A program made the translations under genes and the position numbers. The notes beneath the pieces were generated by a model. It was not told the origin of the DNA, searched no databases, and worked only from the letters and a program-made list of their open reading frames with translations. Below, one piece after another: positions 14,165-20,829 of a DNA stretch of 64,000 nt; position 1 is the first letter of the stretch; each line of letters begins with the position of its first letter. The stretch is from Piromyces finnis finn. Its lineage: Eukaryota > Fungi > Neocallimastigomycota. The stretch is from contig MCFH01000004.1 in NCBI GenBank assembly GCA_002104945.1, forward strand, positions 930,001 through 994,000, written 5' to 3'.

Positions 14165-17100
14165 TTAGTAAAATTTCCAATTTGTATAATCAATTTTGAA
14201 TTTATCATTCGAAACTGTTTTAATAGAATCATTCTTACAAATAAAACAATTTCTACATGTACAATTAGTCATATTTGTATTATCGTACTCTTTAGATCTG
14301 GTATTTCCTATTTCAAAAATTTTTTGAGTTTCATTGGAAGCAGGTGTAAACATATCATAAAACACCTTTAATGATTGATAATAATTATTTTTATTAATAT
14401 GGTTTTCTATATAATGTAAACCTTTTTTATATTCCTTTTCATTATAAATATTATTTTCTTTTGTCTGAATTTCATTTTTGGATTCATTATTATATGAAAA
14501 TTTGTCCAGTATCATAGAATCATCATCATTGCAATTATTAATATTCTCATCTAATAGGGTATTTACATTATTTGCATTATTACTGCTATACTGCTCATTC
14601 AAAGTTAAATGCTTTTCTTTTATTACATTAATTTCATCATATTTATTATTGTGATTCTTTTTTATAGATATTGGTAATAATTCATTTGATTTTACACAAG
14701 TATCATTTTCATGATGAATAGATATGCATTTTTCATTTTCAGTAATATTACCAAAATCAAATTCATCCATAATATTATTTTTAATTTTATTTTCATTTTC
14801 ATTTTCATTTTCATTTATTAATATATTTTTAACAATATTATCTTCTAAAGATTTTGAATACTTGTTTAATTCTTTATTATTAGTTATTACAGGTCGTTTT
14901 GTTTTTTTTGATGAATTGTTATTGTCATTTAACTCAATATTATAACTTTTATCAGTAGAATCAATATGACTTTTTTCTTGACTATATTTATTTTTTGTGG
15001 CATTTTCAATAATAATCTCACTATTATTAGAATTAATCTCGCTTTTATTTTTTTTATTTAAAGTATCTTTATTATTGCTATTATTAGTATCTTTAATTAT
15101 TAAATTATTATTATTATTATTATTATTATTATTATTATTATTATTATTATTATTATTATTATTATTATTATTATTATTATTATTATTATTATTATTATTA
15201 TTATTATTATTATTATTATTATTATTATTATTATTATTATTATTATTATTATTATTAACTTTTACTTTCTTTATTAGGTTATTAGAAATTAAAAAGTCAT
15301 TCATATCAATATTTTTAAAATTAGTAAATAAAGTACTTCTTTTATCTATATTTTCAACATTATGAGGATTAATTAAAGAATCGTTTTGTGTTGATATTTC
15401 AGTTTTCCTTTTATTATCTAAATTAATTTCGGAGTTATTAACATTATAAATAATGTCATTCTTTTCATTCTTAATGATATCAATATTAATTATGGAACTA
15501 TTTATAATTAATTCATCCTTTTTATTTTCACTTGAATTATGATTTATCGTTGAATTCTTAACTAACAATTTATTATCACATTTATCTTCAGTAGGAGTAT
15601 TTACTATATTACAATCATTTTTATTATTCTTATTAATTATCTCATTCTTATCTGTCTTATTATTCGTATTATCCTTTAATAAATTATTATCATTTTTTTC
15701 ATTTTCTTCCTTTGTACTGCTTAATTCAAATTTATCTTCATTAATACTATTATTTTTTATTATTCCAATTTTATTATTTTCTGTTGTTTGTTTGATTTCT
15801 TCTTTTATTATACTATTTTCGTTTTTATTCTTTTCTTTATCGCTTATTAATTTCTTTAGTATATTAAAATCATTAAAGTGTTTTTCTTTTACTTCAATAT
15901 TTTCATGATCATCATTCAAAAATATTTTTTCCATTACATCAGTATTTGATTTAATTTCTTTAAATTGAATTTGTTTATTATTAGAATAATCATTGTTATA
16001 ATTATTATTATTTATTGGTTGTCCATTGGTTGTTTTATTGGTATTAACATTATTAACGTTTGAAGTTGGGTTATTTTGAGATTTTATGGGTGAACTTACA
16101 CTTGATGAAATATTAATTAATGAATTTTCTTTTATGCTATTTGCTCTTGATTCATTTAATTTATTATTATGTTGTAAAGTAAAGATTTGGTTTAGTTTTT
16201 TAGATGCTTCCGCATATCTTCTTTCAGGATTATTACTTTCAAAATTTTTATTGAAACTAGAATAATTCTTCGTTTCATTTATAATTTTTGGGTGGTTTTT
16301 TAATGACTTATTATCAATAAATAAATTACTTTTTATAAATGATAATGGAGAACTAGACTTATTTTGTCTTATAAAGTTTCTACTACTTAATGGTGATAAT
16401 CCACTTTGATTAAGAAGGCTAGAAGAATACTTTGAAAATATGGTATGTTTATTTTGCTTAGAAGGAGGAGATAAGGAAGCAAAAAATGAAGAAACATCAT
16501 CTGTTCTTTTTGGAGATCTAATAGGTATTTTTTTCGTTTGGGGTATACTTGGTATAACTTTGATATCAATATTGGTATTGAATGAAACTGATTTTTTCTT
16601 ATAACTTTCCGAAGTACTTTTTTTTAAAATACTTGTAGGTTTTATAGGTGTTCTATTAGGGCTATTTACATTTACTTTTTTATGTAAAGATTGGTTATTA
16701 CCCTTTTCATTTACTTTATCTATTTCTATATTATTTACTATATCATTTTTATTTTGGTCTTTCGATAAATTATGATGTTCTAACTTGTTTTTTTCATTAA
16801 AATCATTAGTATTATTAATTTCATATTTTTTAGTATTAAGGTTATCATTTTTGTCTTTAATAGGAAATATATTTTGATTTTCAGGTTGAACTACAGCTTT
16901 AAAATCTTGTTCTTTATTATTGTCATTAATTGATTCAGCCAACGAATTACTATTATTAATAATTTTTTCTTGTACAGGTGATTTATTTATATTCTTTTCT
17001 TGTTCATTAATTCTTGTAAAAGATTCATTAATTTTAGTATTATTTTCTTGAATTTTCTTCTTTTTCTCTTGTATTCTTTTTTGATAAAGTCTAAAGCCAT

Positions 17101-20100: not shown

Positions 20101-20829
20101 ATATAATCAAAATTATCAATATATAACTGTAATTGCCGAGATTTGTTATCATATGAAAAATTATACTTTTTTAATATTATAAAGCAACCACGTAAAGAAG
20201 TGAATGATATACTATTAAAGTATATATATAATATTTTTAATAATATTATTTAGAAATATATATATAGAATTATATAAATTTTAAAATTAGAATTTCAAAA
20301 TATATTTTAAATTTTTATTATCATTCTTATATAATTTCAATTTAATTACTCTGGTTCATTAGCTCGAAAAGTGTCCAAGGCTTTTGTTGAAAATATAGCC
20401 ATAATAAAATTAGTTTTATCAATAACATATGATAAACAAGTATCATTTGGATTCTCTTTTGTTGGACATTTTAAAAACTATTATTGTTGATTTTTTCATT
20501 ATTAATTTGCATTTCAAAATTAATTTTAATATTAAAAATAAATTAACATTTATTAAATTACAATAATATATATATATATATAAAAAGAAATACAATTATA
20601 CAAAAAAGAAAATAATAATAATAATAATAATAATTCTTTATAATTTTATTTATTAATTTTTATCAATTTATTAATTTTTTACCTGAGCAATTTGAACTCT
20701 TCTACATTCTTCAAGTTGTACATTTTTCACTGCTTCTTCTATTCTGATTTTAGAATTATCTTTTGATAATATTTCATTAACAATTTTAATAACGTCATTC
20801 TTTAACCATGGCTGTAAAAAATCACTCAT
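14165..20829 (-). CDS. TPP1/Tpz1/Est3-like telomere (shelterin) protein: N-terminal OB fold, POT1-binding-motif-like segment, very long Asn/Lys-rich tail; about 12 exons, roughly 1,800 aa
   Basis: Spliced N-terminus MSDFLQPWLKNDV..RVQIAQ|FLKCP..SYVIDKTNFIMAIFSTKALDTF..|DISFTSLRGCFIILKKYNF..LQLYIDNFDYIGGQANVY resembles recalled S. pombe Tpz1 (HPWL..SITSLRGGIVTL..FQG). Segment CYISSEDRSILDNL resembles the human TPP1 POT1-binding ISENDQLILSSL. Splice phases I checked (first exons, and the junction into the 4.1-kb last exon 18254-14165) are in frame. Confidence 0.78.
15104..15256. repeat. Perfect (AAT)51 coding microsatellite (poly-Asn)
   Basis: Uninterrupted ATT run on the + strand, in frame in the large minus-strand exon. 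Confidence 0.95.
17189..17263. repeat. Perfect (AAT)25 coding microsatellite (poly-Asn)
   Basis: ATT run on the + strand within the same exon. Confidence 0.95.

Follow-up and report, generated by a model that had tools for sequence, protein, structure and literature searches.

TPP1, a protein of telomeres, is the partner of POT1 and recruits telomerase. Tpz1 of Schizosaccharomyces pombe has 508 amino acids (aa) and human TPP1 (ACD) about 460-544. The linker shows less conservation than any other part of TPP1 and spans 50-700 aa in metazoans (Myler et al., PMC8653790). In S. pombe Tpz1, a short and highly conserved stretch right after the OB fold, residues 185-212, suffices to bind the third OB fold of Pot1 (PMC9333443). 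Here we describe a locus on the minus strand of a window of 64,000 nucleotides (nt) from the anaerobic gut fungus Piromyces finnis (Neocallimastigomycota; contig MCFH01000004.1, positions 930,001 to 994,000). The locus is probably the single TPP1/Tpz1-type gene of this fungus; its 12 exons would encode about 1,823 aa. Positions are those of the window unless another sequence is named.

The arrangement of the P. finnis protein resembles that of Tpz1 and human TPP1. The OB fold comes first and is followed by a short conserved segment at the position of the POT1-binding motif, a poorly conserved linker and a conserved C-terminal end; POT1 and TERT are also encoded in the P. finnis genome. The protein differs from Tpz1 and human TPP1 in being about 3.5 times longer (an original prediction, made from the letters of the window, had said more than three times), in carrying extra conserved blocks in the linker, among them SILK/RVxF-like and SPKR motifs, and in ending with a four-cysteine (Cys4) module that has no detectable similarity to the TIN2- and Poz1-binding motifs. 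Like budding-yeast Est3 (about 180 aa), it has this OB fold and, at the N-terminus, FLQPW(I/L). Unlike Est3, a telomerase subunit that is an OB fold alone, it adds about 1,650 residues encoded by in-frame conserved exons.

The nearest proteins outside the anaerobic fungi are microsporidian TPP1/Est3-domain proteins (Encephalitozoon, 271 aa; Astathelohania, 488 aa; Nosema, 566 aa), whose OB folds are 23-28% identical to that of P. finnis. They are much shorter, and no motif shared with them beyond the OB fold is significant. The linker of the P. finnis protein, about 1,400 aa, is twice the metazoan maximum of 700 aa (PMC8653790), and the last exon of Neocallimastix is longer still. We regard the locus as a real TPP1/Tpz1-type ortholog, and its linker as an extreme form of the known variable linker of TPP1.

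The N-terminal OB fold

A TPP1-type OB fold had been predicted at the N-terminus from a series of short motifs, all of which are found in the first three exons: exon 1 holds LQPWL and RVQI, exon 2 D..N.I.AIFS, and exon 3 FTSLRG and Y.GG. When residues 1-175 of the public protein of the locus (P0001, described below) were compared with Pfam, the TPP1 family (PF10341, cut-off 26.5 bits) was matched with 56.1 bits and an E-value of 5e-15 over profile positions 1-147 of 158, alongside a weak match to TEBP-beta. Single exons match the same profile weakly but colinearly (Table 1). When 1.84 billion representatives were searched exhaustively with HMMER, only 15 relatives had E <= 0.001. They comprise two models from Neocallimastix (212 and 336 aa), some fragments of exon size and one from an ichthyosporean, three proteins of microsporidia (271-566 aa), and proteins from metagenomes that reach 1,131 aa. 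Some of the relatives are labelled in UniRef as TPP1/Est3-domain proteins, and that of N. californiae as EST3.

A profile of twelve OB domains of these relatives, searched against the PDB, matched Est3 of Saccharomyces cerevisiae (E 6.7e-5) and TEBP-beta of Oxytricha (E 0.004). The AlphaFold model of the OB domain, built from the twelve-domain alignment, has a predicted local distance difference test score (pLDDT) of 87.6. Foldseek, the check proposed with the original prediction, placed human TPP1 first (5i2x, 2i46 and 7qxb; E 1.7e-7; target-normalised template modelling score 0.69-0.82), followed by Est3, TEBP-beta and Tetrahymena p50. On its sequence and its predicted structure, the N-terminal domain is assigned to the TPP1/Est3 OB family, as had been proposed. 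A phmmer match of the OB fold to ribosomal protein uS12 (E 0.005) was put down to chance similarity between OB folds.

The gene model

The public protein of the locus, BCR36DRAFT_409041 (P0001), is a "hypothetical protein" of 1,691 aa that joins the OB exons to a long last exon. It was found by a word search with part of the 1,316-aa open reading frame (ORF) of this exon, the position of which was confirmed in the window. The further searches used parts of P0001 (up to residue 686) and the exon 12 stretch 14168-17614. The introns of the public model are all GT-AG (10 of 10), and its junction peptides were reproduced. An eleventh intron, between exons 5 and 6, is likewise GT-AG.

The revised gene differs from P0001 at three places. 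The eleventh intron is retained as coding in P0001; its counterpart on a metagenome contig (L001) contains stop codons, and it is spliced out in the Neocallimastix models (junction NLPG/W). To judge from these comparisons, its retention is an annotation error. P0001 also omits two Asn-rich in-frame pieces of exon 12, the more upstream of which is conserved as protein in P0002, the 1,379-aa ORF of the same metagenome contig. Summed over the exons, the corrected coding sequence is 5,469 nt and encodes 1,823 aa, in good agreement with the roughly 1,800 aa predicted.

One gene or two genes

The upstream exons had been predicted to splice onto the 1,316-aa ORF. On comparative evidence, it is likely that the OB exons and the big exon form one gene. 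The public model agrees, and colinear conserved exons are found in two other anaerobic fungi. On the metagenome contig the twelve exons are all present upstream of the ORF and in line with it, at 43-90% identity; P0002 itself, which the word search returned together with P0001, is 47% identical. In Neocallimastix (L005 and L006) the OB exons, the middle exons, the SILK/RVxF block and the C-terminal block follow each other in this order on one strand within 8.3 kilobases. The last two blocks lie in an intact open exon of 1,629 aa (L005, 13426-18315), the ortholog of exon 12, of which only the last 143 aa are annotated as a gene.

The locus could instead hold two genes, one for a small Est3-like OB protein (exons 1 to 6-8) and another for an Asn-rich protein that starts from the Met at 18115. 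We consider this unlikely. The Neocallimastix annotations speak for it, as they comprise only OB proteins that end after 212 or 336 aa. So does this Met, which together with the residues that follow it (MIDETEKMLNQLE) is conserved in the relative, where the called ORF begins with it. A word search, moreover, found no spliced transcript-derived fragment spanning exons 9-12. The 212-aa model, however, stops 23 nt short of the following conserved exon, and is therefore a truncated model rather than a natural Est3-sized protein. Upstream of the Met a further 46 codons are open, back to a canonical AG acceptor, and the metagenome contig is also free of stops ahead of the Met of its ORF. Exons 7-11 are conserved coding sequence with in-phase GT-AG junctions, stop-free from the OB fold to the big exon, and the public P. 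finnis model joins both parts.

The number of shared sequence words also argues for a single gene. Of the sampled 31-mers of the stretch 18000-20900, fractions of 0.45, 0.40 and 0.32 were present in three small P. finnis runs. The share expected is 0.44-0.47 for the fully spliced mRNA, 0.16 for the OB exons alone and about 1 for genomic DNA. Judged by these numbers, the runs would agree with a single set of spliced exons.

The long last exon

Exon 12, which contains the 1,316-aa ORF, is stop-free over 1,362 codons (18254-14168). The window has a guanine-plus-cytosine (GC) content of about 18%, and at the local base composition stops occur by chance at a rate of 0.107 per codon. Since a stop is thus expected every 9.4 codons, the whole exon would be free of stops with a probability of about 1e-67. 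In the two remaining frames there are 112 and 385 stops. The exon is held open by selection, with open stretches of 1,362, 1,379 and 1,629 codons in three lineages.

The alignment of exon 12 from three species (P. finnis, the P0002 organism and Neocallimastix) contains four islands of conservation (Table 1). The linker had been predicted to be greatly expanded, and the poly-Asn ORF had been called apparently featureless. The expansion was borne out; the linker is not featureless, because it holds the four conserved blocks.

A single gene could also have acquired its extension by neutral low-complexity inflation in an 18% GC genome, the blocks being without function. We find this very unlikely. 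In its favour, the exon is 23% Asn and has runs of 25 and 51 Asn (Lys makes up 14%, Ile and Ser 10% each), most of it aligns poorly between genera, and no Pfam family matches the extension. Yet the four blocks are 50-70% identical across genera while the remainder drifts, the C-terminal 100 aa keep their invariant columns and cysteines, and the exon has stayed open in all three lineages.

The second block contains a pair of motifs resembling those by which protein phosphatase PP1 is docked, defined here as [GS]IL[KR] upstream of [KR]x(0,1)[VI]{P}[FW]. Both are present in P. finnis and in P0002; Neocallimastix keeps the RVxF motif, and its SILK reads SILV. The spacing is like that of the PP1-docking cassettes of Rif1 and KNL1, with SILK about 10 residues N-terminal of K-S-V-S/R-F, and the RVxF part is invariant in the three species. 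Unlike those cassettes, the putative PP1-docking site lies in a TPP1-type protein, and its SILK is altered to SILV in one genus.

The C-terminal 101 aa (14168-14470) are 53-66% identical among the three species, with 40 invariant columns, including four invariant cysteines. This module has no relative in Pfam, the PDB or the ESM Atlas. The PDB sequence searches with this module and with the exon 5 region yielded no telomere protein; matches to RBX1 and Shedu were set aside, as they run through expression-tag sequence of the ENLYFQ type.

The segment following the OB fold

Exon 5 (DINKISDEDCYISSEDRSILDNLP) comes directly after the OB fold and is the segment (CYISSEDRSILDNLPG) that the original prediction had described as resembling a POT1-binding motif. 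Piromyces and Neocallimastix share 88% identity over it, against about 35-38% over the OB exons, which puts it among the best-conserved pieces of the protein. By its position and conservation, and by analogy with Tpz1, it is a candidate POT1-binding motif. The resemblance is one of position and conservation; no similarity to the solved TPP1/Tpz1 peptides was detectable. A similar motif (..CISENDQLILSSLGP) is presumably present in the POT1-binding domain of human TPP1, and is given no weight.

Points on the other side

Several results weigh against the assignment to a TPP1-type gene. Searches of PDB sequences gave no significant similarity of exon 5 or of the C-terminal module to the solved TPP1/Tpz1 peptides, and the comparison of either with a distant 530-aa relative by hhalign was not significant. 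The AlphaFold2 model of the C-terminal module is of low confidence (pLDDT 47.5), too poor for a search by fold. The low confidence would fit a motif that folds on its partner, or simply a shallow alignment. The OB folds of RPA70N come close behind the leading matches in Foldseek. A search of the genome found no TIN2-like gene, a negative that says little because the same kind of search misses this TPP1 gene itself.

That the protein is an RPA70N/TPP1-class OB protein with a role away from telomeres, for instance as a scaffold of DNA-damage proteins, is extremely improbable. The N-terminal OB folds of Rfa1/RPA70 do match (E 2e-6 in Foldseek, 0.002 in the profile search), but the top-ranking matches are TPP1, Est3 and TEBP-beta, and these extend over the entire domain, the N-terminal helix and its Est3-like FLQPW included. 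The Pfam TPP1 score is double the curated cut-off, and the nearest relatives carry TPP1/Est3-domain labels.

POT1, TERT and other telomere components

The POT1 ortholog of P. finnis is a multi-exon gene at about 69440-72600 of G000:C232 (minus strand; L009, 5443-8604). Its exons give colinear matches to POT1 OB1, POT1PC and OB_POT1A. The C-terminal OB fold, the third, lies at about 69440-70130, is distributed over three or more exons and has two CxxC pairs (CxxC..CxxC). TERT is also present, its RNA-binding domain being matched with 86.8 bits. The genome contains TTAGGG arrays, of which two exact TTAGGG x4 lie about 170 nt apart (G000:C157:631402-631619). No Poz1 was found.

Two other loci were considered as POT1 candidates and rejected, one of them (L002) as SHLD2_OB1-like and the other (L003/L008), suggested by a POT1PC match, as RADX/Cdc24-like. 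The first, at G000:C162:92022-95300, contains an ORF of 548 aa (L002, 1405-3051, minus strand), the C-terminal end of which matches SHLD2_OB1 with 47.9 bits (cut-off 26). This family is the first OB fold of shieldin subunit 2, and a fold like it would be unexpected in a fungus. The second is a multi-exon gene at about 799700-802400 of G000:C222 (L008, 3700-6420, minus strand) with matches to CDC24_OB1, OB2 and OB3, of the type of RADX and S. pombe Cdc24.

A possible working of the protein

From what human TPP1 and S. pombe Tpz1 do, the OB fold would recruit or activate telomerase, and the exon 5 segment would clamp POT1 at its third OB fold. An anchor on the duplex-telomere side, like that given by the TIN2- or Poz1-binding ends, may be provided by the conserved C-terminal module. 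The approximately 1,400 residues between them would mostly be a disordered tether with short docking sites, for PP1 of the SILK/RVxF type and, at SPKR, of the CDK type. A bolder and rather doubtful proposal is that the TPP1 of anaerobic gut fungi is a giant scaffold that has absorbed the jobs of other proteins, with PP1 docking similar to that of Rif1 and a lineage-specific Cys4 module that contacts the duplex-telomere side in place of the TIN2/Poz1 bridge.

The domain as such is not new, since Pfam finds it at once, UniRef labels its relatives as Est3/TPP1-domain proteins, and variable linkers are a familiar theme in TPP1. The locus is a new member of the TPP1 family with an extreme yet precedented feature. 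It places a full, putative TPP1/Tpz1-type POT1 partner, beyond an Est3-like OB protein, in the Neocallimastigomycota, for which a literature search found no paper on shelterin or telomere proteins, and extends the range of TPP1 linkers to about 1,400 aa. New biology could lie in the conserved islands, and most of all in the PP1-docking-like site and the Cys4 end. These two offer handles on how single-strand and duplex telomere DNA are bridged where neither TIN2 nor Poz1 is recognisable. The annotations can also be corrected: one intron has been kept and two coding pieces cut in P. finnis, and both Neocallimastix annotations miss nearly all of the 1,629-aa exon.

Features of the locus and neighbouring genes

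Table 1. Positions of the exons, conserved blocks and neighbouring genes in the P. finnis window
Feature	Position	Strand	Remarks
Whole gene	20829-14165	-	12 exons
Exon 1	20829-20683	-	ATG and N-terminal helix of the OB domain; FLQPWL shared with Est3; 51% identical in L001
Exon 2	20477-20350	-	OB strands; Pfam TPP1 profile 54-85; GT-AG junctions
Exon 3	20211-19992	-	OB strands and C-terminal helix; Pfam TPP1 profile 90-148
Exon 4	19882-19853	-	10 codons, NEEVYHYGWK; 90% identical in L001
Exon 5	19768-19696	-	Candidate POT1-interacting motif right after the OB fold
Intron	19695-19618	-	78 nt, GT-AG; in frame and stop-free; retained as coding by the public model
Exon 6	19617-19565	-	GT-AG junctions
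Exon 7	19468-19173	-	Acidic conserved segment; 69% identical in L001
Exon 8	19075-18893	-	GT-AG junctions match the public model; conserved and colinear in L001
Exon 9	18804-18727	-	GT-AG junctions match the public model; conserved and colinear in L001
Exon 10	18629-18531	-	GT-AG junctions match the public model; conserved and colinear in L001
Exon 11	18424-18350	-	GT-AG junctions match the public model; conserved and colinear in L001
Exon 12	18254-14165	-	1,362 codons and stop; 23% Asn; orthologous open exons of 1,379 aa (P0002) and 1,629 aa (L005)
1,316-aa ORF	14165-18115	-	Within exon 12
Piece omitted by P0001	17314-17108		Asn-rich, in frame
Piece omitted by P0001	15337-15065		Asn-rich, in frame
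Basic block	17003..17116	-	..RLYQKR.QE..; ORF residues 334-371; three-species alignment
SILK block	16304..16645	-	..TSILKK.. then ..KKSVSF.. (PP1-docking-like) and CDK-type SPKR/SPKK site; ORF residues 491-604; three-species alignment
SILK..KSVSF pair and SPKR site	~16460-16645		
EIKSN block	15845..16018	-	..EIKSN..VMEKIF.NDD..; ORF residues 700-757; three-species alignment
C-terminal module	14168..14437	-	Two predicted helices, CxCxxCxxC, ending ..IDY.NW.FY; ORF residues 1227-1316; three-species alignment
ARPC3/P21-Arc gene	~21929-23648	-	Upstream, same strand
RhoGEF-PH-WW gene	~10085-13762	+	Convergent

The gene occupies the interval between the ARPC3 and RhoGEF genes, a synteny common to P. 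finnis and Neocallimastix that also speaks for a single gene. A second copy of a TPP1-like locus, flanked by the same two genes, was observed in N. californiae (L007, MCOG01000063.1, 10001-15000). It has no ORF of at least 100 aa downstream of its OB exons, and stops interrupt its C-terminal block. Whereas the L006 copy is intact, this one is probably a duplicate in decay.

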